In this document: positions 10,331 to 62,241 of the stretch, one piece after another
Layout: each line of letters starts with the position of its first letter
How positions within the stretch are numbered: position 1 is the stretch's first letter
NCBI GenBank assembly: GCA_025201805.1
Contig: MU619332.1
Span: 1-64,000, forward strand
Length of the DNA: 64,000 bases
Reading direction: 5' to 3'
Origin: Parasitella parasitica NRRL 2501
Taxonomy: Eukaryota; Fungi; Mucoromycota
The notes under the pieces: model-generated
Told to the model about the DNA's origin: nothing
Seen by the model: only the letters and a program-made list of their open reading frames with translations
Database searches by the model: none
Program-made: the position numbers and the translations under genes

Positions 10331-10408
10331 TTATCTTTTTCGTTTCTTCATGGGCTGCAAAGGATTTTGATGTTTTTGTTCTTGTAATTGATATAACTGT
10401 TGTAGTCT

Positions 10409-10453
<45 letters not shown>

Positions 10454-11056
10454 ATGACTATGGTAGCTTTCATTTTGCATTAATCCAATGGGTAGAGGCA
10501 AATGATTAACATTCGGTGTAGTCGGTGATACCATACTATGATATTGATGGGAGGAAGAGGTGGATGAAGAAGAAGTATGAGGGTGATGGGAAAGATATGA
10601 TGCAATTTTAGTGGCATCTACCGGCAAAGCTGCTGGTAGATTGTGTATGGAAGGAAGTCTATTATTATTAATGTAGTTGCTTTTAGTTAAAAAGTTATTG
10701 ACTGCAATGGGATCTAAATCGTGAACATGTAATTGGAATTGTAAGATAGTTTTCAACATGTCTTCAATTGCCTTGAGTCTATCTTCAATGGCTTCCAGAG
10801 CTATTTTCGAAGGTCCTCCATGATTTCGTTTATCGTCCGCTTGTGAAGCTGTTGGATAAACACAGGCAGTGCTTGACTTTTGACAATTTCTACATGGTTG
10901 TTCTCCATTACACTTTGTTTTTTTACGACGACATTCTCCACATGCACTCATTATTTTGGCTCGTTTTTTCCGAGGTTCCACCGTTGTTGCGGCTGATGGA
11001 TTAGCAGCTTCATGGTGTTGTGGTAGTGGTTGTTGCTGCAATATGTCCTGAGGCAT
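10331..11056 (-). CDS. Zn(II)2Cys6 transcription factor with poly-Q tract
   Basis: ACGECRRKKTKCNGEQPCRNCQKSSTACVY binuclear cluster, coiled coil LEAIEDRLKAIEDML, poly-Q, C-terminal KKRKR; intronless 241 aa. Confidence 0.93.
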
Positions 11057-14014: not shown

Positions 14015-17223
<3,209 letters not shown>

Positions 17224-23470: not shown

Positions 23471-24718
23471 CTATGACGATGTAATAAGTAATAAAAATGC
23501 TGTGAGAGTAATCGATATTAGAGGATATAATGATGGTTTGTTTAATTCAACTGCAACTGATTCTTCAGAACCTGATTTGAGCAAAAAGTTCTTTACCAAG
23601 GATCCAATCCAAAAGTGCTGTGATTCTTCAGTGTCTAACAACCCCTTTTCATCAGCAACCACACCGATTCGCCAGCGTGGGTTCTGTTTAGCATTACTGA
23701 GGCCATCACCATCATCATCATCTACTTCGTCGTCATCATCAGCATTGTAAAAGCTGTCATCGTTATTATCGGCTTTGGAAGTATTGTTTTTCCCTTTACC
23801 AATTGCTTTAAATCGACAATTTCTACAAGGCGGATGAGGTGGTGTATAGAATGGGTTCGATAGATCATCTTTTGATATACCAGATACTGAAGATATCCAA
23901 TCTAATAAACCAGCAGCATTTGTGAAAATTTCGACAACTGTATTCTGCTCTCCGTCGACGTGAGCGCTCAAGGGTATCGGGCATGTGAGTTGATCAGGTT
24001 TGGCATCACGGGCACCAAATATACGAGTTAGATCACCTAGAACGTATGGAACATTGATGGTATGATTCGTAGCAGGGTTTATTACAGATTGATACACAAT
24101 CAGGGGCCCGCCTGAATCGCCATGGCATGCGACATGATTTTCTGTATCTGATCTACTTTCAATATAATCAACACTCTGTGGATCGAATTTGGTAATCTCT
24201 AATGGCAACAGCTGCAAAGTTTGCGCTAAATTTCCTTCCAAATCAGAATAGCCGAATCCAATCAATTCAGCTTTACTTGGCAATGAAAGAGGCATAAATG
24301 GAGACCAAAATGGCACTCTTTTCAAACGAGCAGATTTTCGTAACGGTGACTCCAATTGTATAATAGCAGCGTCGTACCTGACGTTGAGTGTTCCTGAGAC
24401 ATTGTACAACGGGTGAATTGTCCAATCAATAATTGCCATAGCTTTTTGTTTGTCGCGATGGATGTCATTGTACAGAGCGAAATAAGGGTTTTTTTCCTTT
24501 GCGTAATGCTTGGGGTGGACAGGAGCATCCAAACAATGAGCTGCAGTTAATATCAGAGGCGGGTCGTACGAAATCAGTGTACCACCGCAAACATGTGGGT
24601 TTCCAATCATGACATAAAACGGATACTTGTATTGGTTTGTAATGTCTTGACCAAATTGAACAGAATCAATGACATGAAAACAGCATGCTAAAACTATGCA
24701 TATAATGATGAAATACAT
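23471..24718 (-). CDS. Secreted S1 (chymotrypsin-fold) serine protease with GPI-like tail
   Basis: Signal peptide MYFIIICIVLACCFHVIDS; CGGTLI, LTAAHC, DAAIIQL, CHGDSGGPL; acidic linker; hydrophobic C-terminus; intronless. Confidence 0.9.
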   Translation of the reverse strand: MYFIIICIVLACCFHVIDSVQFGQDITNQYKYPFYVMIGNPHVCGGTLISYDPPLILTAAHCLDAPVHPKHYAKEKNPYFALYNDIHRDKQKAMAIIDWTIHPLYNVSGTLNVRYDAAIIQLESPLRKSARLKRVPFWSPFMPLSLPSKAELIGFGYSDLEGNLAQTLQLLPLEITKFDPQSVDYIESRSDTENHVACHGDSGGPLIVYQSVINPATNHTINVPYVLGDLTRIFGARDAKPDQLTCPIPLSAHVDGEQNTVVEIFTNAAGLLDWISSVSGISKDDLSNPFYTPPHPPCRNCRFKAIGKGKNNTSKADNNDDSFYNADDDDEVDDDDGDGLSNAKQNPRWRIGVVADEKGLLDTEESQHFWIGSLVKNFLLKSGSEESVAVELNKPSLYPLISITLTAFLLLITSS

Positions 24719-24898
24719 CTTTTTTTTTTTTTTTTTTTTTTTTTGTAGCTTGGAAATAGAAAACAATAGAAAAGAAAAAACGATGTTTTCACAAAACCTT
24801 ACGTATATAACGAGAAATTGCTGTCAAATAACATACATAGCATTCCCTGTAAATGTGGTATTTATATAAAAGCCCCTTATAAATATTATTATTTGTTG

Positions 24899-29331: not shown

Positions 29332-32300
29332 ATGCAAACAAATATCGATTTCCAGCAACTTAAAGAGATTCAAGAGAACGAAATAGAGGCTTTGAAAGCT
29401 ATTTTCATGGAAGATTTCCAAGAGGTGGTAAACAAAACAGCCTGGAAGGTACATGGCATTGAAAAAGAAAACGCTTTCATTATTCCCGTACTCAAGCAAT
29501 TTTACAGGTATCTCATTCCGATCCAGAGTTCATCTTGCATCTTTACCCTCTCGGCGTGGAAGAAAGCGAGGCTTATACGACAGTAGACCTCAAAGTACGA
29601 TTTCCAAAGTCGTACCCAAACAAACCACCCGAACTTCATCTGCTCAACCCTCGTGGATTATCTAACACCGTCTTGCGTCATTTAGCGCATTCGCTCCAGC
29701 AGACTGCCCAGCAACTACTTGGCCAGGAAATGACGTATGATTTGACCGATCATGTACGTGCCTTTCTGGCTAATCATAATGCGCCACCTCCAGCTGTCCC
29801 AAAACTCACGCTGCACGAGCAAATGGTGATTCGCAATGAGCAAGACTTGAAGGTGGAGAGAGAGCGTGAATTGGAAGAGCTGGCACGAAAAAGACAAGAA
29901 CGAGAAGCAGAACTTCGAGTCCAGTCTGACATGATGAATGAAAAGATTCAGCAAGACATTGAGCGGAAAAGAGAGCATGCTCGAGTCGCTAGACAACATC
30001 GGCAGGAATTTGGGTTCTCGAATGGTGGTGAGGCCATTGTAGACGACGACTTTCATGCTCACTTTGACAGCTCGGATGCGCTAAACAACTTGGACAGCAG
30101 CGATATCAAAATGATCAATTTTGAGAATCTGATAACAGTAGCTATCGAAAAGGAAGAAAATGGAATTATACCAAAGAGAATCTGCTTCCATACGGTTGCA
30201 ATTGGACCTTGTGTTGGAAAAGGTGTTGTAGGCGAAACTTTCTCCGCACAACCGTTGAACTATAAATTGATAGGCGAAGGTGGTAACACAACAATGGATG
30301 TGGATAGTCTGGTCCTGCCAAGTCTTTTGGCTGTCAAACGAGTAGTCGTAACTGGATCATACTATACTACTCAAGCAGGAAAGAGAAAGCTGCAGGACGT
30401 CGAGAGAGAGCTGGATAGACTGCGTACAATACAGCACCCACACATACTCAATGTGTACGATGCTCGCTTAGATCGTAATCATATTGACCGAAATACCTGG
30501 ACTTTGCATATTTTGATGGAGTATGAACAGGGCGGTAGTTTGCATGATTTACTCAAAAAATGCGGTGGTGGTCTGCGATTGGCAATTGTTCGTAAATACA
30601 TGAAGCAGCTGTTATGGGCTTTGAATCATATCCACCTTAATGGATTCATCTGTAAAGGTATTGTGTAGAGGACTCCATCAATTTTTGGGGGTGGGGGTAC
30701 ATACTGATGTTCCAATAGATATTCGATCCAATAGTATCTTTTGTGGCAACAACCAATCTGTCAAATTGGCTGATGTTAGTTACAACAAGCGTTTGCATGG
30801 CAAGTAGTGTAATTTTCTTTGCTCGTTAAACATGTCATGTTGACTCGCTATGAATAGACTTGAATAAATCAAACTTTTTGATTGAGGCCGATGATGCGGA
30901 AACACCAAGGGCAGAGTCAACATCAGCATGGAGTTCACCTGAATTGAGGGAGCGGCCAGGCGTGTACGGCAGGAAAAACGATATTTGGTGTCTCGGTATT
31001 GTTTTTATAGAAATGCTGTGGGGCATTGACGTTACCAAGGAATTTGGAGATTTTGATGCCTTTCTGCGCACTGCTGGATCAGAATTACCAGCTATCGCCA
31101 ATGATTTTGCAAAGAGATTGTTAGAGCCTGATCCAAGAAAGAGGCCTACTGCTATTGACTTGATGAACGATGCGTTCTTTTCTGGAGATAACGAAGCCAT
31201 GATATCCGAACAAGCTGCACCTCCTGTATTCTCTGCCAATGTTGCTCCACATGTAAATTCCAGCAAACTCAACCATGCAGATCACAATATCGCTCCTCCT
31301 CCTCTCCCTCAACTGTTCGAGCCATCTGTGGCTCCCGATTTCAACAGATCCATCTATCCTCCCGACAACCATAACCGAATGGCGACAACCATAGCTGTAA
31401 ATACACAGCACCCCCACACACACGGCCAGAACTTTTCCTCTTCTGATGCTAACCCTGCACCAATCATCAGCACTTCTCGATACAGGACAGATTTTGAAGA
31501 AATCGAGTTTTTAGGAAAAGGTGGATTTGGCGAAGTGATCAAAGCTCGAAATCGATTAGACGGCCGACTGTACGCCATCAAAAAGATTCGTCTAGATCCT
31601 CGAGACAGCGAAGATCTGCGCAAGATTTTAAGAGAAGTGCACTCGTTATCCAGTCTTCACCATCAGTATGTCGTCCGATACTTTGCTACTTGGTTTGAAG
31701 ACGAGGACGGGGCCAGTTTCAAAGGCAGTGATGATGAGAGCTTATCTGATGAATCAGAATCAGAATACGACGATGAAGAAGACGGCGATGTCAGTGCTTA
31801 CAAGCAGCAGTTTCATGACTTCTTGTCTGTGGATAATCATAAATCCAAAAGCAAAAGCAAGAGTTATTCAGCCATTCAGTTTGACGATGATGGAGATGAA
31901 AGCAGCAGCGAAGAAGAAGACGAAGATAATTCCGAGCTGTACGAAGACGAAAGCACTACAGGCTATAATTCAGACAATTTTATCTCTTTTGCCCACAATG
32001 GAGAGACAGATGGAGACAGCACCAGCGATGCGACCGCAGATACAGTGTCAACAAAGAAGCAGCATCTCGTTCGTAAAGCATTCAACAACCTCAAAAAGAA
32101 ATCTGAAGAAAAGAGCACAGAGAGCCAAAAGAGAAATCATCAGCAGCGTACTCGAGTCTTGTATATTCAGATGGAATATTGCGAGAAGAAAACGCTCCGG
32201 GATGTCATTGACGAGGGTATTGATGAGCAGGAGGCATGGCGTTTGTTCCGTCAGATTCTTGAAGGGCTGGTTCACATCCATTCGCAAGGCATGATCCATC

Positions 32301-35137
32301 GAGATTTGAAGCCTGCAAACATTTTCTTGGATTCCAATAACGATGTCAAGATTGGGGATTTTGGTTTAGCTACGACAAACCAAACTTTGGTGGACGGCGC
32401 TTTGTTTGCCAAGAATGCTAGCCATCGTATGACGGACAAATTCAGCGCGAATTCATCTGTTTTTGCGGCTGGTGCTGCTGAGAGCGCAAATGCTAGCTAT
32501 ACGGGATATTCTGTGTCGAGTGCTCATGTGGGTGCGGATGAAAGCATGACAACTGGTGTAGGCACAACATTCTATGTCTCCCCTGAGGTGATGCCTGATC
32601 CAGCCACTGGTGCTACATCCGGCATGCGATACAATCAGAAAGTTGATATGTTCTCGCTTGGTATCATCTTTTTCGAAATGTGCTATGGTCTTTCTACGGG
32701 TATGCAGCGAGTGATTGTGCTAAATGAGTTGCGAAGTGGCAAGTTTCCCGAAGATTTTCCATCAAACTATGTGAACCAAAAGAAGATCATCAAGATATTG
32801 CTATCTATTCAACCCAAGGACCGACCCAACAGTTTCGAACTCTTACGTAGTGACTTATTGCCACCCAAGCTGGAAGATGAATATATCAAAGAATGCGTGC
32901 GCACTATTGCTAACCCAAACACGCCGTATTACGACAAGCTGATGTCTGCCATGTTTTCTCAGTCAGCTGATCGACACAAGGATTTTACGTACGATTATCA
33001 GACTAGCGCTGAAAATTCATTTGACCCCTTTAGCCATATCTTTTTTGATTGCATTCGTGAGCAAATGGCCAAAGTATTCAGACGTCATGGTGCTATTGAT
33101 GTCTCTGCTCCTCTGCTAATACCCAAGAATGATTTGTACGAATGGAATTGGAAAAACCCAGTGTATTTGATGGATTCTCAGGGTGCACTGAACCAACTGC
33201 CATACGACCAGACTGTGCCATTTGCAAGATACATTGCTCGGCAAAAAGGATTTCCAGAGCTGAAGCGCTTCACGTTTGACAAGGTGTATCGAGAAAACCA
33301 GAGTGGCGGTCAGCCTGAAGCTGTATTGGAAGCTGATTTCGATATTGTTCATAAAGAAACAGCACCTATGGTTCCTGATGCAGAGGTGCTTAAAGTGGTT
33401 GAAGAGGTGTTGGAGGAATTGCCTCCGTACAAGAATGGCGGTTTCTATTTCATGGTTAATCACACGGGCATTACAGATATCATTCTTGATAGTTGTCGAG
33501 TTCCACCAGACATTCGGAAGGGAGTCTTGGTTGCTTTGTCTAGCTTAGGACGTGCTCCATCATTTGCTGCTGTGCGCAATATTCTTAAGCTGAAATACCA
33601 TCTGCAACGTAGCGTACTTGATGAATTATCCATGTTCAATGTGCATGGCGAATTGGAAAACACTGTCAAGAAAATTGAAGGCCTATTATCCAATGCCCAC
33701 AAGACTAAATTTAGAGATTGTATTAGTGACCTACGCACTTTGATGATCGTGAGCAAACATATTGGCATCCACCACAGGATTGTCTTTCACCCGCTTTTAG
33801 TGTAAGTTGGATATACAAATACACTTAAAGTGTGTTGCGGAAAATTAATCCCGATTAATATTCTAGATACAACAACCATTTTTATAAGAATGGTATGGTG
33901 TTTGAGACAGTGGCAGACACAATTGATTCGAAACGTAAGGATGTGCTCGCTGTAGGTGGAAGGTACTGTATTCAATGCGTCACTCATCACACAAAAGCAA
34001 TGCTGATTGTGTTATAGATACGATTTCCTGGTCCAACATTTCGCACATCCTAATGCCACCGCTAATCGAAAATTGCGAGCTGTTGGCGTAAATATTGCAG
34101 TTCAAAAACTCATTCGGCATCTGGATATGCACCAGTCAGAGCAAGTAAAATACCTCATGAAGGCCAAGAATGAAAAGATGAGAAGTTTCGGTCTGTGGGC
34201 TCCCAAAAAGTGTGATGTCTACGTTGCTAGCTTTGGTAAGGTCTTGATCCAGGAACGTCTGGAAATAGTTCAGGAACTTTGGAACCATGGTATCCGTGCA
34301 GAGTTCCAGTATAATGATGGTGATTACTTGACCCCTGAAGATTTGGTGTCTTTGTGTAAGAAAGCAAGTATCAATTGGATTGTTATTGTGAAGCACAAGA
34401 ACACAGAAAGTAAATCACCTTCTGTATCCGATTCTACAACAGTCAAGGTCAAGGATGTTTTACGACGGACGGAGACAGAAGTGAGCAAGTCAGATCTTTG
34501 TATTTGGTTAACTACTGAAATCAACGAGCAAATTAGAGTTGATTCGGTAGCAAGAATAAAGAACAAACATGACTTGAAGTCAAAGGATACATCAGATTCA
34601 GGTATAGTTGATGTATACTGTGAGATACAGTCTATATACTAATATCAATTTAGTGCGAAATGATCCCTTCTCTCATGATCTGTCTAAAGGCGATGGATTA
34701 GATCAAAAGAAAACAGCTTTTGATGTGAATATTGTATTCAATGAGGGGCGTGGCAAAGAGCGAACAAAAATGAAGCACAAACATAAGACTGTGCTTATTG
34801 ATAAAGGTATGTAAAACAAATACAAAATCTGATTTATAACATGGTCCTCATACGCTGAACAGCTATTCATCGTCTTACTCCCATCATGGATGATTTGAAA
34901 AAGGACGTCCAAGTAATTGCATTTGATTTACCAAAGGAAATTGTTAAGCACATGGTAGAACTCTGCTTTTGGCAGGACGATGGATACAAGAAACTCTTAG
35001 ATCATGCTGGTATTGGTCAGAGAGATACCCTTAATAGAGTGAGACATGCAATTCAAAAGCATATTGATGCAAAGCATAAATGTGTGTGGCTTTATTCTCA
35101 CAAAGATGATTTTGCCTTGTTGTGTGTATTGCCTTGA
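29332..35137 (+). CDS. GCN2: eIF2-alpha kinase Gcn2 (RWD, pseudokinase, kinase, HisRS-like, C-terminal domain)
   Basis: [12 protein letters not shown] and YPNKPP (RWD); [51 protein letters not shown]; [22 protein letters not shown] (HisRS-like); about 8 exons. Confidence 0.97.
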
Positions 35138-35477: not shown

Positions 35478-36449
35478 TTAAATCTTTTCTAAAATCATCT
35501 TCTCAGTTACATCCCAAAGCCGCTTCGCCATTTCTTGATTATTTCCTTGTTCATTCAAAAGGTCTGTGTTGACGGCGTTGTTACTGTAAAATTCGCCCTT
35601 TATCACATCAGGAGATACCGCACAATACACATTGGTAGAGGCTCCAACGTCAACTTGTTTTCTAAACTTTCTTTCATTTAAAGCGACCTTGTATTTCCTC
35701 ATATTCCAAAACATATCCACGATGGTGGACAAACTTGCATGCCGGCTCATCAGATTAGTGGCCACACTTCCAGGATGAAGACTAGTTACGGTAATATCCA
35801 CATTTTCAGCATCAAATCGACGTTGAAGTTCTTTAGCGTGCAAAATATTGGCCAGCTTAGATTGCCCGTAATGATAATAAGGGCTATAGAACTTTTCTCC
35901 ATTCAAATTATCGAAATCCAAGCCTTTGGCGCTTAAAAATATGCTGTTTCCAGATGAACTGACATTGACAATACGAGAAGGTGCACTCTCTTTTAGTCTT
36001 TCAGTCAAAAGTGATGTGAGGTAAAAGTGGCCAACGTAATTGACTCCAAATTGTGTCTCAAATCCATCTTTTGTGGTTGACTGAGCACATCCCATAATAC
36101 CAGCGTTATTGATGAGAACATGAAGCGGTATTTTCAGATCAAGGAAGGCATTTGTGAACAGTTTTATAGACGAGAGATCAGATAAATCAAGCTCCATCGG
36201 CACCAGATCAGCATTGGGTACGGTTTCTTGGATGTATGCAATGGCTTCTTGAGATTTCTGTAGTGTTCTGCAAGGAATAATAACTTTGGCACCAGCAGAA
36301 GAAATTACACGAGCAGTTTCTTGGCCTACTCCAGAATTGGCACCTGTAACAATAACAACTTTGCCTGTCAAGTCTGTCTTGTAGAATTGGAGGATACCTG
36401 CGGCTGTAGTGTCCCATTCGATTGAAGCAGTTGCGATTGTAGTAGTCAT
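35478..36449 (-). CDS. Short-chain dehydrogenase/reductase (retinol dehydrogenase/WWOX-like)
   Basis: TGANSGVG, LINNAG, FGVNYVGHF, RIVNVSS, YGQSKLAN, LHPG; intronless. Confidence 0.93.
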   Translation of the reverse strand: MTTTIATASIEWDTTAAGILQFYKTDLTGKVVIVTGANSGVGQETARVISSAGAKVIIPCRTLQKSQEAIAYIQETVPNADLVPMELDLSDLSSIKLFTNAFLDLKIPLHVLINNAGIMGCAQSTTKDGFETQFGVNYVGHFYLTSLLTERLKESAPSRIVNVSSSGNSIFLSAKGLDFDNLNGEKFYSPYYHYGQSKLANILHAKELQRRFDAENVDITVTSLHPGSVATNLMSRHASLSTIVDMFWNMRKYKVALNERKFRKQVDVGASTNVYCAVSPDVIKGEFYSNNAVNTDLLNEQGNNQEMAKRLWDVTEKMILEKI

Positions 36450-38595
36450 GTTTTCTTGTTTAATTCTCAAGAGCTTATTTGAGTGAATCGATTCATATTT
36501 ATATCAGTTTCAAAAATCTGATCTTTTTGACCGATGACGAATTCAGACCCTTAATAAGGTATCAAACCTATATTTGTCATTGTTGATAGAGGCTCAGGAA
36601 AGGGGTACGTAACATATTTCCTATTCAGCACATATTCACCATATCAAAAGATATCTCATACGCCTCAGCTCACGAAAATTCCTTGATATATCTGGGTCAT
36701 GTATTACCCATTATTCCTTGGCTGCACACCCATAGCTCTACTTAGCCTTCATCTGAAGGCATTTTTTTTTTTTTTTTTTTTACTTTTCTCAGTGTAAAAT
36801 ACTACGTAAAACTCAATTTAAAATCAAAACTGCTTTTGAACTTTTTTAATAACACAGGTATAACGCATTGGATTCATTGTAACGGTTTGTTCAGGAACAC
36901 TCAGATAAAATAATTGCAAAAAAGAGAAGGTGAGCTCTACTTTGTTGAATTTAACCTCGATCGCCAAAAATAAGTTGATTAGTAACAATTATGATGTCTT
37001 GTTTTAGCAAATTTTTGAGAGGTATTTATTTGTTGGCAAAATTACCCATCATAATTTGAACAGATGTCAAAATCATAAAGTTAATCAGATGTAAAAACCT
37101 ACAGCTTTCGGAAACAAAGATAATAATAACGCTGATCAATGAAGATAAGAATCGTCGCACTAGCAGGTTAATTGCCAATTATTTGCAATTGTCAGGCTAT
37201 GCAGCAATATTTCACGGACAAAGAAGAATTATTTTACGCTTAATAAAACGTGTGCCTTAATATACCGATACAGCGGCGGTACATAATTTGGTTAATTCAA
37301 AAAAGAATAAACTTATTAAATGAAGACATTATGTGTAAAAATGAAAATTATAGGTATACATGCCCGGATTGATTTCATATTAATAATCATGGAAAAAAAA
37401 AAAAGTTTTTGCCACTATACACTTTTTAGTAGGCACATCGCCCAGTGGAAACCAAGTTGTGCTCAGATAGTGATGATCACGCATATTTTCATGGCGCACA
37501 AGACAAGGTTTATTTTGCTCTTTATCGAAGCTATCAGCGATTATATACAATTTTCATGTGGTTTCTGTACTGTTATTATAGATATCGATGTCTTTATTGG
37601 TGAAATTATTTTTATTAGAAAGCGCTGAGCTTTTTCCATGTTTTCCAGATTATTAGATCTATTCGTTTTAGCAGAGGTTATGACCAAAATGTTCGTTAAT
37701 AATGAAAACAAAAGAAATTTCACAACATTATGAATTTATAAATATTTATCTGAACTTGCTTTTTAACAATGAAGAGATCCGTAATAAAAGTTAAACATGT
37801 ATATGTATATATATTACATGAATATAAAATTTTCTGTAGCAATGGGGGATAGTATGCTCTGCATCACGTTTTTAGTAACTTTCGAACAATTACGAGAATT
37901 TCTCCTAAATTTTAAGGTTTTGTAGAAAATTGTGATTTCCAGTGTATTCATCATCGATTCTTAATATACTTGAGAACAAAGGAAGCTATAATAGTTGTAC
38001 CTACAATAAAAAAATTTCATGGTAATATATCCATTTCTGCCCGCAATTTGTATTGAAGTTCAGTGTACTATAAGATTTCAAATATGCAGTAATCGTGAGT
38101 TTTTCTCTAGTTTTCGCTATGGGGTTTTGCTTGTAGGTAATGGTTGGAATGTATTTGCTGCTATTTATTAATAGTATACTGTAAATAAATTAAGATCAGG
38201 ATCATATTGATGGTGTCTCTGCTGCATAGTTCATCTACTAGTACCAGATAGATCTAATTGAATGAATGGCATACATATGGAACTAATATCTGGTGATTAT
38301 CTGTGTGTTCAATTTAAAATGCACTTGTATCTAGTTGCAAAGCAAAGCGTCTTTGCGGCAACATGCAATTTTATGCCGGAGTATCACAACAAGATGCCCA
38401 GGTGTTCAAACTCTGTCATTACAGGAAAAAGTTACTGAAACGATGCGTTTATTTTAATATGTATGTTTTTTAATGAGTTTGGTGTCATATATATATATAT
38501 ATATGTATGTATGCATGTATATAACGTTCAATAAAGAGTTGATGAATGGAATAACAATCTAAAGAACGATATGAATGACTTCAACAGGAATTTGC

Positions 38596-51591: not shown

Positions 51592-52685
51592 TTAACCCTT
51601 CTTCCGGTTCTGTACCTTTATATCGGACACATCTGCTAAACCATCGCCAGTTAATCTCAAGAATGTGATGCCCTCAGTATCACCTACTAGGGCCATGACA
51701 AAGGTAGGGCCATATACACCCGATTTGGTGTATCTGAGTTGAGGTTTGTAGTTGGCATTTGGTGTTCCAGTTAATTGGCCAAAGAACTGATTTAGCTCGT
51801 ACAATGTTGGCATGCGGTCGTTTATATTTTTGACTACAACTCGAAAATCTGGGTCTCCAGGGTCCCTTTTCCTCCAGCCAGGCCTTGGCTTATAGACATC
51901 CCAGTCAAAAGTAGAGCATAACGATGCATAAAAGGGCTTGTACCATGGCGAAGACGGAATAATCTGTAAGGTAGAATATATCTGAGAGTAACTAGTGCAT
52001 CTATAATCCCAGACAAGAGGTCTGTGTTGCACAGGTTGGATCCAATGTGTGATGGCATTAAAGAGTAGCTTGAAAATAGAGGGAGCTGGTTGCTGCTTTG
52101 CTGGTATTTGATCTTTCGTGGAGGTAACGGCTGCTTTTTTGGATCTCATGACAATGTATCCCAGCCGTTTTAAATATGCATAAACTTGGTATTTATCAAA
52201 TGTGATCCAGCCATCGCCACATTCGCACATAATCTCGCAATAGTCCTCGAAAGAAACTGGATCATCCGTTTGCCGTGTAACTATTAATGCGTTTCTAGCA
52301 ACTAAAAACGCTGCTTCTTCAGGGAACAATGTAATTGCGCCTTGATTAGAGAATCCCATTGAATGGAGATGAGTGCCTTTGTTCTTTTTGATGGCTGTAT
52401 GATACGGGGATGATGGATTCAGTAGCCCTTCACTCACATTTTTCGGTAACGCGACTGTGTCCGATATGCAATCAAATAGAGCTTGGCGAGATACTGCAAG
52501 CTGCTCTTGATTTGCTTGATTCGATGCATTTGCTTTCTCGCCTCGTTTCGGTGCTTGACTCTTTTTACTGCTGAGATGGTCAATAGGCGATGAATTCAAA
52601 GGCCATATTTTCATCTAATCTACCTCTTTTTCTTTACCAATTGAGAATAGTCTACCAATAGTTCATCGGCTTCTGCATCGCTCAT
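51592..52685 (-). CDS. SEN54: tRNA-splicing endonuclease subunit Sen54
   Basis: Exons 52685-52624 and 52570-51592; PKRGEK, LFPEEAAFL, YQVYAYLKRLGYIV, DVYKPRPGWRKRDPGDPDF. Confidence 0.88.
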
Positions 52686-52851: not shown

Positions 52852-53704
52852 ATGGTATACGCGAGAAGGTCTTGTTACAAGTGCGGCAATGGTAAGGCTT
52901 ATTTTTGCATCAGAACACCGGCAACTAACACAAACATCCAGCGGGCCACTTTGCTACTGCTTGTGCTGAAGCGGAAAGACTTTGTTACAACTGCAAGCAA
53001 CCGGGCCATTTGAGCAATGAGTGCACTGAGCCCAAGTTCATTCAGCCCAAGACTTGTTACAACTGTGGAGAAGGTAATGGAAAATATGGCTGGGCTATTG
53101 CATTGCAACTCATTCTTGTTCAATAGTTGGTCATATCATCGCTGATTGCCCCAATCCTGCGCTTGCCACTGCTCACGTCAAAAAGGAAAAGCAATGCTTT
53201 AATTGCCAGGATTATGTAAAATACGGTATATCCACAGACAAGAATCTACCAGGCGATTGACATTGGTTGACATAGGGACATATTGCTAGAGATTGCACCA
53301 ACGAAGCTCAACCTCGTCATTCGGCGGAACGCAAACAACAGAGATTCAAGCAAGTCGTATGCGAAAATTGTGGGGGACTCAACCATTATGCAAAGGATTG
53401 TCAAGCAAGCGATATTGTCTGCTACAACTGCAAAAAGCACGGCCATATGGCTCGTGAATGCCCCCTCGCTATTTCCTCTGTTCAGCCTAGTGCTGCTGCT
53501 CATAGTGATAGACCTGTCAAAGCATGTTATAATTGCGGTAAGCCTGGCCACATTGCTCGCAAATGCTTCACTGCCAAAAGGGAGAGAGATGAAGATACCG
53601 ATGGAACTGGTAATGAGAGCGATGACGATGGCGGGGAAGAAGATATCACAGATTCAGAGCTGTCTGCTACAGAGTCTGAATCTGACCAAGACCGTACAGC
53701 TTGA
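52852..53704 (+). CDS. GIS2: CNBP/Gis2-like protein with 7 CCHC zinc knuckles
   Basis: Exons 52852-52891, 52941-53073, 53127-53215, 53276-53704; seven CxxCxxxxHxxxxC motifs; acidic tail. Confidence 0.85.
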
Positions 53705-53753
53705 TTTGTGTGTTTTTTTTTTTGCAATAAAAAAAAAAAAAAAAAAAAGCCTC

Positions 53754-56700
53754 ATGATTATAAAGGATGTGGAATTACACCTCCTTATTCTGGTATTCTG
53801 CATTTGTCATACACGGGCTACAGGTCGTCTTCTTTCTTTCTCTTTCTTCCTTCATCCCTTTTTATTTCGTCCGAATATGAATTCGTCCATAACACCTGCT
53901 GGGCAAGAACTGAAAAGCACCAACAGGCCCATCTTTGGTGCGAATTCGATAGTAATCAATGATACCATTTACATACATGGTGGTTTTTATAATGTTGCTC
54001 CGTGGAACAAAGAGGCCCTGTGGGCATTGGACAGTTCACTCAGCAAATTTACTCAATTACAGACAGACCCATTTGCCTCACCAGCTGTGACGTACCATTC
54101 GCTACAGTCTCTCAATGCTTCAACGCTTTTAACCTTTGGCGGCCATCTGAACGAGCGAAATCTTACACCCCCCACTGAACCAGAGTATCTACGTTACTAT
54201 CAGCTCAGTTTCGATTCAATGCAATGGACACCGCTGCAGAAAAAAAATGCCTCAATAGCGACGCCAAGAGAGAGATTTTGGCATACGACTAGTAAATCAA
54301 ACAACATTATATACCTGTATGGGGGCATGAATATGACTCATGGCATGTATGATTTTTGGAAATACGACGCACAGACAGATGGCTGGACCAGACTGTCGAA
54401 TGTAGAAATGGCCAGATGTGGGCATACTTCAACCATGACTGAGTAGGTACAACTGCCTGACCTTATGCCCATTATCTAACACACTCGATTTTGCTTTTAG
54501 TGATGGCAAAATGGTTGTTTTGGGTGGCTATGATTGCTCCAACTCGTCGCTGTTGACATCAGCGACAAAGAGTTTAATACCCTTAGATAAAGCCACTATT
54601 TATGACACCAACACGAATAAATGGTATGAGCAGACCCTGAAAGGAGATATACCGCATGCGAGAACTTTTCATACGGCTGTCAAATGTAAGCATAATTAAG
54701 GCTCTTTAAAGTGTGTGTTTATTTAAATTCGGATATTTGTGTGTTAGCAACACATAACCAAATCATCATTTGTGGAGGTAACGCAGGAACTTCTGGATGT
54801 GTTGTATGTACACTGACCTTATTTTAATAGGCCAAGATGGAAAAGTAGAACCGTTTCAATCGTATCTGTCGGGAGAACACGCTGTTGATATGACTGCAGT
54901 ACTCAAACTAAACACATGGGAGTGGCGCATTCCAGACGCCTCACCCTATCAACCCTTTCCAAGGTCGCATGCCATAGCCAGCATCGTTAACGACACAAAA
55001 ATGGTTTATGGATTTGGTATTAAACGAAAAACAAGGGGCGACTGCGACAGAAACTGAATTATTCATGTAGGTATTAATTATCACACAGTCTATGATGGTT
55101 TGTATGTGTTTGACTCAGAAATCAATCAATGGCTTTCACCATATGATGCGTACCATGACACCATCCAACGCTACTCTGTCGGTTTAATTGTCGGATTATC
55201 AGTTTTGGGAGCCTTTCTCGGTTCAGCTTCGGTGGTCTTGCTGGGCTACTGGTTGATTAAACGGCATGGTGCAATTATTAACAATCTGTTCACAAACATA
55301 AGACAAAGTATATGGAACCCAAGGTAAAACATTACTATATTGTATATATATATATATATATATTCATATAGGCTATCCTAATCTCTTACTTTTTGGCAGA
55401 TCAGGAGAGCCATTGTGGGCCGAAATCAGTCGACTTCTGTTTCGTTTTTCATTTCTGGCCATCTTCATCACAATGACCACCGTGCTAGTTCTGCAGGTGC
55501 AAAATAGCCCAATCATAGATCAACAGTATTATGATCATAATTCTGATTACACGGTTATAGCTCCAGGTATTTAAGCTCATACTGCAATGACAACAAACAG
55601 GTATTTATAGTAAATGGGCTGTATAGACATAAGGTTTTGTTTTGACGGCTGGGTCAACACTACAAGCCCTGTATTACAATGCGCCACTGATTTCGGAGAA
55701 TCATGCGACACTTATCTGATCAACATCACGGATAAAGTCAAATCCAACTTGAATTATTACGGTACTAAGCTATCTTGTCAACTATTCAGAGCACCCAAAA
55801 AGTTATTCAAGCTGGGAAGAACAAATGATCGCATGGCTCATAGTGGCTCATTTCTCAAATTTTACTACTATGGTATACCCAGTACCAGTGACAGCATTTT
55901 ACATGTCGAATTATACCACCCTGACCACGATCCTAACCTTCCTGTGTACAACATCACTGGGGAATTTGAATGGTATAGCTCGGATGAAAATGCCAAGTTT
56001 CAGTCTTCAGAGCAAATGAACCTAAAGACAGAAAATGTGTACGAAGTTCATCCCACTTTCGCTACACGTATTGGGTATGAATTATTCGAGCGACAAAAAA
56101 TGGACGGTAGTGCGTGGAATTACATTGGTTTTGGATCTGCTCGCATATCACAGTATTGGTTAAAGAGTAATCAAATGAGTGCAGATAGAGATACATCATA
56201 CAGTACAAACCCACAACCTCTGGGCTCACTGCATATATACCCTATGCGATACGACACAACAGTGATGCGAGAACAAAGAGCGTTTACATTAGTCAATGGT
56301 ATGGGTATTGTTGGTGGTATATTTGGCCTCATTGTAGGGTTCCAAGCTAGTTTGTTTGGTTATCGGCCTAGATCGCCATGGGGTATAGTACACCGTTGGT
56401 CAGTAGGGCTGATGAGAAGGTCGTTGTTGCAAGGGCTACGAGCTAGATTTCCCACAACAGATGAAGTTCATATTCCAATTGTTCATCCTGTTCACAGACG
56501 ATTTTCTGAGGCACTAGCAAAATCACCAATGACACCAACTACTGCTAAAAAAGCTCAGTTTTTCCAAGCTACTATAGAGGAAGAAGAAGAGGATAGCTTG
56601 ACAATTACATCACAGAAAAAATATCAGGAGGACGAAGAAGAAGACGAGGGGAAAAGAATGGCTCGTTTAGAAGAAAGATTGCATGTATTTGAGCTGCTAT

Positions 56701-56759
56701 TTCAGGCTTACTATATAGACGATGAATTGTTTAGATCATTGCAAAATGCCCAAAAATAA
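53754..56759 (+). CDS. Kelch-repeat protein fused to a DEG/ENaC-like two-TM module (putative receptor-channel)
   Basis: Hydrophobic N-terminus (start could instead be 53877); Kelch repeats (IYIHGG, LLTFGG, IYLYGG, MVVLGG, IIICGG, MVYGFG); three TM segments (~55180-55255, ~55430-55495, ~56290-56360); last exons 55400-55566 and 55627-56759. The gene is solid; the channel call is inference. Confidence 0.85.
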
Positions 56760-59607: not shown

Positions 59608-62241
59608 GCTTCTATTATTGGGAAGATGGCAATATTTTAAGATGGGAATCTAGTCTTGTTCACTTCAGTCATTAGTATTCTTATTCTGAATGTTTATTGT
59701 GTAAGGGAAAGCACACTTTGATCAGGAGTGTTTTCCTTCACGCGACATTCATTGATAAGGTCTTTAATTTTATTTGTAATTCGGTTTGATTTATATGACT
59801 CTATGTGTTATGCGAACTCGAATGGCATGAATTGACTATGCATGACATTTGAGTCTTATTTTATCAGCTATGCGCTTTTAGTTATATCATTCCATTGCAG
59901 TTCGTTCGTTATGAACAGCAGTTGCAAGCGATGTCTTTAGCGTTCTGTTCATACGTTCTACTAGTCCATCCGTCTGTGGGTGTTCCACCGAGGTCAACAA
60001 TCGTTTAATGCCTAGTCTTGCGCATACCTGCGTCATAGAATCACCCACCAACGAAGAGCCATTATCTGTGATCAATCTAGTTGTAACCGAGAACTTCAAC
60101 CCTAGTTCATATAATAGCGCTTGTGCTATATGGTTAGTGTGATAACTGGGAAGAGCCACCGCAATCGTCCATTTGCTCTAGTATTCACATATAACCAGCA
60201 GATATCTGTTGCCAGTTGTCGATAAAGGGAGCATTGCTATGTCCAGAGCCCAGATTTTGCCTATTCTTGAAGGTATAATTGGATTCATCGGCGGTACCAC
60301 CGAATCATTTCGGATCTTGTAGCGTTGGCATTCGTCGCATGTTCTAATCCAATGTTTTACATCGTCAATCATGGTTGACCACCAGCCTAATAATCGCACT
60401 TTGGCTAGTGTTTTGCCTACGCCATAATGACCACCAGTTGGGAGATTGTGCACGCTTCTTAATAGCGACTTGACCATGGGCTGAGGAGTAATTGAAACCA
60501 TCGAGCCGTCTTCGTATTGATACCAGAGAATGTCGTCTTTAAAAGCATATGGTTTCTTGACGTCTTGTTTCAGGATTTTCTGGATTTTCTTATCCTTTAA
60601 CTGTTCCGCCGCTTTCAATTGTAAGACTCCCGAGAGGAATTGCACAGCTCCCGCACCGCTTTCCCCTTGCGCTGGAGCTTTGCTCACCTTGCCAGCTTGG
60701 ATTTCTTGACTATTTTTACTTGATCTCATCGACTCAGTGCCTCAGCATCGACATTCAGAGCGCCTTTCCTGTGAACAATTGTGAAGGAAGACTCTTGAAT
60801 TGCTAGGATCCACCTAGCAATGCGTCCTTTGGGTTCATTGGTTGAGAGTATGCTCTTGAGGGCCGCATGATCCGTATATACTGTCAAACTTGCACCATAC
60901 AGGTACGGATAGAAATGCTTTAACGCATACACTACACAGAAAGCTTCTTGTTAGGTCGTGCTGTAGTTCTTTTCCGCAGGGGTCAGAGTTCGACTTGAAA
61001 AGGCAACAGGACGTTCATCTTGTACAATTACTGCACCCAGTCCATGCATACTGGCATCAGTATGTACATCATACGGTTTCGATGGATCTAGGTAGGCCAA
61101 TGTAGGGAGCGTCATAATAACTTTCTTCAGAGTTTCTAAGGCATTGAGTGCGCTTCCTCAGACCACTCATAAGGGACATCTTTCCTTAATAGTTGATACA
61201 GCGGAGCCGCCACAGGAACCAAATTTTTAATAAATCGATGATAGAAAGCACAAAATCCAAGAAACCTTAGGAAAGCCGAGACCGACATTGGAACCTTGCA
61301 ACCTTGAATCACTTGAACTTTTGTTAGATTTGATCTGATTCCTTGATCGCTTACTATAAACCCTTAAGTATGCAACTTCTCTCTTGAAGAATTGACATTT
61401 GTTGACTGAGATTTTCAAGTTATATTCGACCAGTCTTGACAGAACCGCACGTACTGTAACTCTTCTTCGAGAGTTTTCAGAGATGGGCTAAATACTATTA
61501 GGTCGTCCAAGTATACTTTACAACGTTGCAACCGTGTGTAATCCAAGCCATGAACCTGGCAAAGGCATTTGGGGCGGTAACGCAGCCAAAGGGCAGAACC
61601 TTGAAGTAGTATAAAGCCCCATCTGCTATAAACGCCGTTTTAGGGGAATCCCGTAAATCTAACGGTATTTGCCAGTAGCCCGCTTTTAAGTCTACGGTAC
61701 TTAGTTACTTGAAACCATGCAATTGATCTAGCAATTCGTTAAGATTTCCAATTGGGAACTTGTCCTTGACCGTAATTGCATTAAGCTTGCAATAATCTAC
61801 ACAGAAACGCCACTGAGGAGGAGTACCATCTTACGCTGCTTGTTCATGATCAACTTTTTTGATTAGTACCACAGGCGAACATCATGCGCTTGTGCTTGGT
61901 TCGATTACATACGCCTTTTCGTAGCATTTCAGCAACTTTTTTCTTGATTTGCTGCGTTTCCGCAAAAGGTCGTCGGTAATCTCGCACAAGAACAGGTAAA
62001 GCGTCGCCAATTATGACACGGTGCTTATATGGTGCATTCGTAATTGTTTGAGGTTCATCGTCATTTGGTATCAACGTCGAATAATCTTTCAAGATATCCT
62101 CAGCCAGCTGCTCTTCCTTCGTCTTCATTGTTTGCGTATTTTGAGCCTCTTTGACCTTGAATAGTTCCTTTGTTTTTGGTCGCAGGGCCCAATCTTCATG
62201 CACCATCCAATCCATGCACAAGATGATGTCCATATTTTGTT

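Follow-up and report, generated by a model that had tools for sequence, protein, structure and literature searches.

A Predicted ASIC/PAC-Type Fold in a Kelch-Propeller Membrane Protein of the Fungus Parasitella parasitica

Do fungi possess proteins built on the fold of the DEG/ENaC/ASIC channels? The question is raised by a gene on contig MU619332.1 of Parasitella parasitica NRRL 2501 (assembly GCA_025201805.1), of which positions 1 to 64,000 of the forward strand were analyzed (the whole of this 64 kb stretch is referred to below as the window, and coordinates are those of the window). Fungi have been searched for Deg/ENaC proteins and none was found (Elkhatib et al. 2023, PMC10507113), and homologs of TMEM206, also known as PAC or ASOR, were reported to be absent outside vertebrates and a hemichordate (Ullrich et al. 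2019, PMC6663466). No paper was found in the literature that ties Mucorales or Mucoromycota to ASIC, ENaC or TMEM206. An earlier inspection of the letters alone (the sequence-only reading) had nevertheless proposed that the region 55400-56400, which falls within exons 6 and 7 of the gene, encodes a divergent trimeric channel with two transmembrane (TM) helices in a kingdom thought to lack DEG/ENaC, a premise that agrees with the fungal source of the DNA and with the published search. The protein is best described as belonging to a new and divergent fungal family of the ASIC/PAC fold, not as a certified DEG/ENaC member. What is new is the predicted occurrence of the fold in a kingdom from which it has not been reported, together with a new domain architecture that includes a Kelch propeller and one more TM helix as well as a conserved tail.

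Two template-free AlphaFold2 models were examined, one of a Kelch-free homolog (database protein P0003, 59% identical, modeled from a 79-sequence alignment) and the other of exon 7 of the window's gene, which does not include the first TM helix (TM1) and the first strand. Queries in the searches described here were single exons or the database proteins P0051, P0187 and P0003. The P0003 model has a predicted local distance difference test score (pLDDT) of 84.4 and a predicted template modeling score (pTM) of 0.71, and comprises a TM1 helix of 30 residues, a β-rich ectodomain with three short helices, a second TM helix (TM2) of 23 residues and helices in the tail; block means of pLDDT in the ectodomain are mostly above 90. 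The exon-7 model has a pLDDT of 82.3, and its ectodomain blocks (10 residues each) are at or above 87 except for one at 82.

When the P0003 model was compared with 350,542 PDB chains using Foldseek, 96 matches were obtained at E ≤ 1e-3, and all of those listed are PAC/ASOR/TMEM206 or ASIC1/ASIC2/BRTNaC1 chains with a probability of 1.00. The best PAC/ASOR/TMEM206 match has an E-value of 5e-10 (template modeling scores, or TM-scores, of 0.44-0.56 per target), and the ASIC1, ASIC2 and BRTNaC1 matches are at 1e-8 and weaker. The exon-7 model ranks the families in the same order, with PAC at 2.7e-4 and ASIC1 at 3e-3, followed by FaNaC, ENaC and BRTNaC1. Over both models, the DEG/ENaC-type matches (ASIC1, ASIC2, FaNaC, ENaC and BRTNaC1) range from E 1e-8 to 2e-2, with probabilities of up to 1.00. 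The models display the two TM helices around a palm/β-ball ectodomain core that are characteristic of DEG/ENaC proteins, and also the PAC subunit fold, consisting of two TM helices and a compact β ectodomain without a thumb, with PAC chains at the top of the list for both. A Cys-rich thumb and the helical finger and knuckle subdomains are absent from the ectodomain, which has about 240 residues, four Cys and three short helices. The sequence-only reading had counted four Cys, noted the missing thumb and judged the size to be closer to PAC, all of which held when exactly four Cys were found and PAC chains emerged as the best structural matches; the fold comparison that it had recommended returned a β-rich ectodomain between two TM helices whose PDB matches (E down to 5e-10) are PAC/ASOR/TMEM206 and ASIC/ENaC/FaNaC/BRTNaC chains only. 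On these models, assignment to the ASIC/PAC fold is very probable. The protein lies closer to PAC in its predicted size and shape, and closer to DEG/ENaC in what appears to remain of sequence similarity. Since the predicted shape matches two families not reported from fungi, the Mucoromycota probably hold an undescribed branch of the ASIC/PAC channel superfamily.

At the level of sequence, a Pfam scan of exon 7 matched ASC (PF00858, the amiloride-sensitive sodium channel family) with an E-value of 0.0016 and 18.0 bits. The match runs from residue 174 to 238 of exon 7 and from position 384 to 444 of the 455 in the profile, a stretch that covers the last palm strand plus TM2. Of 79 relatives scanned, more matched ASC than any other family (18/79 at E < 1, best 3.2e-4). 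TMEM206 gave no match to exon 7 at E ≤ 10, and was not among the 25 most-matched of the 35 families found at E < 1 when the 79 relatives were scanned against Pfam. A profile comparison with both families had been suggested earlier, and it bore out the DEG/ENaC half of that suggestion in so far as the ASC matches fall at the right place, albeit under the threshold (see later), and not the TMEM206 half. Two family profiles were then run with HMMER against 177,635 distinct PDB sequences. With the first profile (79 Kelch-free sequences), the top 13 of the 14 matches listed were ASIC1, ASIC2, ASIC5 or ENaC-beta (E 0.26-1.5), and with the second, built from a different sample that included TM1 and Glomeromycotina, ASIC or BRTNaC1 accounted for 18 of the 20 listed (best E 0.031). 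Both aligned the identical region (β12 to TM2) in the same ungapped register throughout (ASIC1, ASIC2, ASIC5 and ENaC-beta), and PAC chains were not among the matches listed for either. A single-sequence phmmer search of the module against the PDB sequences gave only a noise match, to a sulfate transporter (E 2.8). The ungapped register of 39 residues against ASIC1 that the sequence-only reading had drawn was picked independently by HMMER, and the ASIC1 string that it gave proved to be close to the real chicken ASIC1 in that alignment. The link to known channels therefore appears borderline when judged from sequence by itself; taken with the structural predictions, it would clearly exceed chance.

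Other parts of the module were compared motif by motif. In the profile searches against PDB, a weak second stretch is co-linear with the first, the fungal C-Y-L-F pairing with C-(F/Y)-(T/M)-F-N of DEG/ENaC. The triplet aligned to the G-x-S selectivity filter is G-F-Q in the window, as had been read earlier, and in the family it consists of A or G, then L, I or F, then Q (53%), D or Y. The His-Gly motif ahead of TM1 is absent; the window has NPRSGEPLWAEISR at this place, and the family consensus is WxPRxGEPxWxE. By its position, its conservation and its likeness to the ASIC motif, the PDIRFC sequence may correspond to the post-TM1 FPAVTxC of ASIC, a pairing made by none of the alignments. In ASIC1, the Cys of FPAVTxC forms a disulfide with that of C-Y-T-F-N, with another pair nested inside; the fungal series C353...C367...C375...C399 might mirror this arrangement.

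The features of the channel-like module and its tail, all on the forward strand, are as follows.

55434-55499 (+): TM1, LLFRFSFLAIFITMTTVLVLQV, read from the sequence; helix 11-40 in the AlphaFold2 model of P0003
55500-56288 (+): β-rich ectodomain of about 240 residues, delimited by the exon-7 model, Foldseek and conservation
55563-55640 (+): post-TM1 motif P-D-I-R-F-C, spanning the intron 55567-55626; strand 60-66 in the P0003 model
56229-56345 (+): 39-residue stretch LHIYPMRYDTTVMREQRAFTLVNGMGIVGGIFGLIVGFQ (LHIYPMRY...GLIVGFQ), last palm strand and outer two-thirds of TM2, in the HMMER register
56289-56357 (+): TM2 with the glycine stripe G-x-x-G-G-x-x-G-L-x-x-G; helix 221-243 in the exon-7 model
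56355-56402 (+): post-TM2 motif F-G-Y-R-P-R-S-P-W-G-I-V-H-R-W-S, a basic ring without an acidic residue, cytoplasmic
56472-56504 (+): tail motif I-P-x-V-x-P-V-H-x-R-F (P632 96%, P636 92%, V637 80%)
56646-56753 (+): C-terminal amphipathic helices, RLEERLHVFELLFQAYYIDDELFRSL; modeled from exon 7 as helices 340-361 and 365-375 (block-mean pLDDT 58 to 78)

The strings quoted in the sequence-only reading (TM1, NSPII..VIAPDIRFCF and the 39-mer) are all present in the window, and TM2 indeed begins about 240 residues after TM1 ends. TM1 is followed directly by QNSPII, and the four ectodomain Cys are exon-7 residues 4, 18, 26 and 50 (codons at 55638, 55680, 55704 and 55776). Further motifs of the ectodomain are a C-x-L-F strand, Y..DPN, a W, WNYxGF and P....EQR.

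Conservation was assessed over 102 sequences, with residues numbered as in P0051, the public model of this gene. Ahead of TM1, the family retains W290 (91%), R293 (97%), G295 (91%), E296 (96%), P297 (89%), W299 (86%) and E301 (81%), and S329 and P330 are conserved at the end of the helix. The post-TM1 strand carries P348 (98%), D349 (88%), R351 (87%) and C353 (97%), with G356 also conserved; the remaining Cys are C367 (91%), C375 (84%) and C399 (96%), the last of which is followed by an aromatic residue, L and F. Within the rest of the ectodomain, Y445, P451, N452, W464, W512, N513, G516 (100%) and P554 are conserved, as are E564, Q565, R/K566 and T569 just ahead of TM2. That the GxxGGxxGL motif is kept in the family, as the sequence-only reading would have it, can be seen from G575 (88%), G578 (87%), G579 (98%), G/S582 (87%) and L583 (63%); the four glycines share one helical face (i, i+3, i+4, i+7), and Q588 (53%) and L591 (conserved) lie farther along. 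Beyond TM2 come F592 (94%), G593 (100%), R595 (84%), P596 (87%), S598 (conserved), P599 (99%), W600 (82%) and G601 (98%), and in the tail H604, R605, L619, F623, P632, P636 and V637. The consensus of the C-terminal helices, ExRxQxLELxxKxYYIDDEVF, is kept across the family. Several Kelch-less members from Glomeromycotina (P0181, P0179, P0180, P0174, P0163 and others) have lost the Cys of the post-TM1 P-D-x-R-x-C motif, and often the Asp-x-Arg as well, so the first disulfide would not be universal in the family; the same members retain the TM2 stripe and LFG...PWG.

When 1.84 billion cluster representatives were searched exhaustively with phmmer, 155 were obtained at E ≤ 1e-3, and word-indexed searches found Mucorales members in Mucor, Rhizopus, Lichtheimia, Apophysomyces, Cunninghamella, Absidia and Phycomyces. 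The family is also present in Umbelopsis (Umbelopsidales), in Jimgerdemannia (which is taken here to belong to the Endogonales) and, among the Glomeromycotina, in Glomus, Rhizophagus, Ambispora, Paraglomus, Racocetra, Funneliformis, Dentiscutata, Gigaspora and Acaulospora. All of the named members are Mucoromycota. A profile of the Kelch-less Glomeromycotina proteins, used in a non-exhaustive search of up to 8000 candidates for members beyond Mucoromycota, gave 10 matches, and among the matches listed all nine with a name (9/9) were from Glomeromycotina. The Kelch propeller is carried by the long members listed from Mucorales and Umbelopsis; those of Glomeromycotina are short (315-445 aa), begin just ahead of TM1 and have no Kelch part. 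P. parasitica itself has at least three paralogs (P0187/P0051, P0209 and P0227). Relatives appear in databases as hypothetical proteins or under the names galactose oxidase, attractin-like, LZTR1 and ACBD5, the latter four being due to the Kelch part, and the channel-like module is annotated in none of the records of relatives examined. At its C-terminus, one relative, P0061 of Pilobolus umbonatus (1142 aa), extends for about 250 further residues that resemble an enzyme domain in its own right attached to the tail, an arrangement that may be a gene-model fusion.

The gene, as read from the DNA and the list of open reading frames (ORFs), has GT-AG borders at all of its introns. Its extent, and the features that precede the channel-like module, are listed below.

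53877-56759 (+): whole gene, seven exons, 840 codons including the stop codon at 56757-56759
53877-54442, 54501-54685, 54748-54777, 54831-55016, 55071-55323, 55400-55566 and 55627-56759 (+): exons 1 to 7
53877-55177 (+): Kelch-repeat β-propeller (attractin/LZTR1-like), exons 1 to 5, identified by Pfam
55178-55258 (+): extra transmembrane helix TM-a, VGLIVGLSVLGAFLGSASVVLLGYWLI, read from the sequence, with flanking charges that obey the positive-inside rule
55259-55433 (+): basic cytoplasmic linker with the pre-TM1 motif W-x-P-R-x-G-E-P-x-W-x-E, spanning the intron 55324-55399
53754-53876 (+): candidate 5' extension from an in-frame ATG, signal-peptide-like, MIIKDVELHLLILVFCICHTRATG..., with a maximum Kyte-Doolittle hydropathy of 3.6

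Exon 6 (55400-55566) encodes SGEPLWAEISR-LLFRFSFLAIFITMTTVLVLQV-QNSPIIDQQYYDHNSDYTVIAP, and once the GT-AG intron 55567-55626 is removed, the reading continues into exon 7 as ...VIAP-D-IRFCFDGW. The same junction is found in P0051, which is KAI8639091.1, 'hypothetical protein BD408DRAFT_421953 [Parasitella parasitica]' (Mucorales), retrieved in the exhaustive protein search; it is 100% identical to the window over the channel-like module and agrees at all exon junctions. P0051 starts at an internal Met downstream of ATG 53877, and the ortholog P0187 (849 aa, 88% identical), from another assembly, begins at the equivalent of ATG 53877. A tblastn search of exon 7 for a second copy of the channel-like module in the 64 kb window returned only the exon itself (55629-56756). 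A (TA)n microsatellite lies at 55343-55364, in intron 5, which separates the exon of the linker from that of TM1.

The Kelch region scored 67.2 bits with PF24981 and 60.5 bits with PF24681, both of which pass the cut-off of 50. With TM-a, TM1 and TM2, the product is a three-TM protein, the linker from TM-a to TM1 being about 34 residues long. The two-TM channel of the sequence-only reading was thus partly right, as TM1 and TM2 do flank the ectodomain, but it had overlooked the third helix, TM-a, and the N-terminal Kelch propeller, with a start some 1.5 kb upstream. Its interpretation is supported overall, and of the three results that it had named as refuting, none came about. Topology was assessed from counts in 85 long family members, in which N-glycosylation sequons were compared with the shuffled expectation: they occur at 1.34x in the Kelch domain, 1.36x in the ectodomain and 0.92x in the tail. 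K+R per residue is 0.06 before TM-a, 0.19 in the linker between TM-a and TM1 and 0.05 after TM1, and the segment after TM2 has 0.18 K+R and 0.001 D+E per residue. Because of this distribution of sequons and charges, the propeller and ectodomain would be placed outside and the linker and tail inside, and the Kelch propeller is probably extracellular. A signal-peptide-like N-terminus is present in 53/108 long relatives. In M. circinelloides (L001), a similar hydrophobic peptide, MKYALHTSLILLFAACHTR, occurs upstream of the ortholog but out of frame, and no such hydrophobic peptide was seen in the upstream DNA of the Syncephalastrum and Backusella orthologs. A run of 20 A at 53729-53748 stands directly ahead of the in-frame ATG at 53754.

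How such a protein might work can be sketched from the known channels. ASIC/ENaC and PAC assemble as trimers whose pore is lined by TM2 and gated by ectodomain movements (PMC8809534, PMC6663466). In the fungal protein, three subunits would likewise assemble round a central axis, as in every solved protein of the ASIC/PAC fold, and the Gly-striped TM2 would line or tightly pack an ion pore. Movements of the ectodomain could then be passed on to TM1 and TM2 for gating, and in Mucorales the covalently attached Kelch propeller may offer a second surface for sensing on the outside of the cell, whose cue could be force or, say, a ligand in the form of a glycan or a wall component. The cytoplasmic mouth might be formed by the pre-TM1 motif together with the basic RPxSPWG ring, and it may be speculated that such a strongly basic inner mouth would suit anions, as in PAC. 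Ion selectivity might differ from that of DEG/ENaC, as the sequence-only reading had supposed. That the gene encodes a subunit of an undescribed fungal family on the ASIC/ENaC/PAC fold, in the full sense of a trimeric channel subunit, is the reading favored here on balance.

Several observations weigh against this favored reading. The ASC score of exon 7 (18.0 bits) is below the Pfam gathering threshold of 23.6 bits, as is ASC in 79/79 of the relatives scanned, and an unrelated Gly-rich membrane family, YqhR, comes close to it (9/79 relatives, 4.1e-4). Sequence similarity to DEG/ENaC is limited to β12-TM2, where Gly-rich helices also draw unrelated families, and the signal for TMEM206 is nil both in the Pfam scans and in the searches of profiles against PDB sequences. 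The HG motif, the G-x-S filter and the Cys-rich thumb, all hallmarks of DEG/ENaC, are missing. On the structural side, TM-scores are modest (0.3-0.56) and root-mean-square deviations are 6.6-12.4 Å; trimer assembly, a TM2 pore and conduction are inferred from the predicted fold alone. Annotated orthologs of the P. parasitica gene have no signal peptide that would carry the Kelch part outside.

Given these points, it is fitting to consider what else the gene could encode. A surface protein of the same fold but in another role (a non-conducting receptor, wall sensor or adhesion molecule that signals through its tail and has no pore) would sit well with the large extracellular propeller, with the long conserved tail (RPxSPWGxVHRWS, PxVxPVHxRF and the C-terminal helices) and with the absence of the DEG/ENaC selectivity-filter residues. 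It is nevertheless considered rather doubtful, as every solved structural match is a channel and as the most conserved parts are TM2 and its two mouths (G575, G578, G579, F592, G593, P599 and G601), a pattern that fits a pore or a tight helix bundle and not a simple anchor. A true but fast-evolving member of DEG/ENaC (PF00858), inherited from the opisthokont ancestor or acquired by gene transfer from an animal or protist, is improbable. DEG/ENaC alone gives a signal at the level of sequence, at the expected position and in the correct register, to which may be added the weak co-linear C-Y-L-F stretch and the resemblance of the post-TM1 P....C to FPAVTxC; yet all 79 relatives remain below the gathering threshold, PAC and not ASIC is the best structural match, and the finger helices are absent along with the thumb, the HG motif and the G-x-S filter. 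Recent transfer is further opposed by the short introns of fungal type and by neighboring genes (Sen54 and zf-CCHC) that are common to Mucor and/or Syncephalastrum.

The resemblance might also be an artefact, a chance match of a Gly-rich TM helix coupled with an AlphaFold model that happens to resemble a β sandwich between two helices. The marginal sequence E-values invite this thought, as does the fact that the Gly-rich helix also matches YqhR, DUF1757 and a sulfate transporter, but two template-free models from different queries, with ectodomain pLDDT mostly above 90, place the same two channel families on top, and the match is carried by the ectodomain (300-480 aligned columns) and not just by the helices, so that an artefact is very improbable. 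A P2X-type receptor has the same layout of two TM helices and an ectodomain, and P2X chains do occur far down the Foldseek list of the exon-7 model; their probability (0.08-0.13) and TM-score (0.11-0.15) led to rejection of the P2X fold, and no P2X match was obtained in the Pfam scans or the searches of PDB sequences, which leaves this candidate effectively refuted. In the other direction, a bolder possibility, offered tentatively, is that DEG/ENaC and PAC, which have been regarded until now as similar in structure but not related by sequence, are two animal branches of one ancient superfamily, and that the Mucoromycota hold a third, which would retain DEG/ENaC-like motifs (the post-TM1 P....C, C-aromatic-x-F and, at β12-TM2, EQ+..G..GG..GL) within a PAC-sized ectodomain and whose members would be working trimeric channels gated via the covalently attached extracellular Kelch propeller. 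If this were true, moulds and arbuscular-mycorrhizal fungi would have a fast ionotropic sensor of their surroundings, and gating by a Kelch propeller would be an arrangement not known in any channel of the ASIC/PAC fold.

The upstream neighbors of the gene are those for Sen54, a tRNA-splicing endonuclease subunit, and for a CCHC zinc-knuckle protein, at 51592-52614 (-) and 53447-53704 (+). A Sen54-type gene is also found upstream of the ortholog in M. circinelloides, and a zf-CCHC gene upstream of that in Syncephalastrum, and this conserved synteny argues for vertical inheritance. Downstream, an ORF at 60178-60729 (-) encodes a retroelement integrase zinc-binding domain (PF17921, 67 bits) and is probably a transposon remnant. 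The window holds a second Kelch-repeat gene at 14015-16685 (+), with PF24681 at 90 bits on the ORF 15323-16096, which has no ASIC/PAC-like module. A GCN2-like gene at 29535-33805 (+), in which protein kinase domains come after an RWD domain, is split over at least two long ORFs. Ordinary fungal genes elsewhere in the window encode a Zn2Cys6 transcription factor (10331-11056, -), a trypsin-like serine protease (23471-24766, -) and a short-chain dehydrogenase (35478-36470, -).

A conserved, multi-copy family with the ASIC/PAC fold in fungi would alter the published picture of both channel families (PMC10507113, PMC6663466), and would mean, barring an old gene transfer, that the fold is no younger than the common ancestor of fungi and animals. 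It would also be an intermediate with which the question of a true relationship between ASIC/ENaC and PAC could be addressed, and Mucor and Phycomyces would offer a simple, genetically tractable setting for the gating of a pore by an ectodomain. The family occurs in agents of mucormycosis (Rhizopus, Mucor, Lichtheimia and Apophysomyces) and in arbuscular-mycorrhizal fungi, and could bear on the sensing of the environment or of a host.

Compared with DEG/ENaC/ASIC (PF00858; chicken ASIC1, PDB 2qts, 4fz1 and 6ave), the fungal protein has the same layout of TM1, β-rich ectodomain and TM2 (Foldseek E 1e-8), and an ungapped alignment covers its last palm strand plus TM2, where E-Q-basic, an aromatic residue and G..GG..GL..G are common to both. 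A Pro/Cys motif after TM1 and a C-aromatic-x-F strand behind it may correspond as well, in the same order. The DEG/ENaC ectodomain, however, has about 370 residues, 14 or more Cys, and thumb and finger helices, whereas the fungal one has about 240 residues, four Cys and neither of these subdomains. WxPRxGEPxWxE takes the place of the pre-TM1 HG motif, and the G-x-S filter is replaced by G/A-x-Q. Added in the fungal protein are the N-terminal Kelch propeller, the third TM helix and the long conserved tail, and it comes from fungi, not animals. P2X receptors, which are trimeric two-TM channels with an extracellular domain, are known from some early-diverging fungi; here the layout is alike but the fold is not (Foldseek probability ≤ 0.13), and there is no sequence match. 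The N-terminal 430 or so fungal residues match the attractin/LZTR1-type Kelch propellers (PF24981 and PF24681), and those names cover the propeller only. The best structural match is PAC/ASOR/TMEM206 (PDB 7jna, 7sqg, 8h8d and 9hqn; E 5e-10, TM-score per target up to 0.56), to which the fungal family has no detectable sequence similarity. As in the fungal protein, the ectodomain of PAC is of similar size and has no helical thumb. The anion selectivity of PAC is set by a basic residue close to where TM2 ends on the cytoplasmic side, and the conserved basic ring RPxSPWG (R595 84%) of the fungal family, which lies after TM2, may be comparable to it. PAC is a single-copy protein of vertebrates and a hemichordate (PMC6663466), whereas the fungal family is multi-copy and carries, in addition, the Kelch propeller and the extra TM helix.

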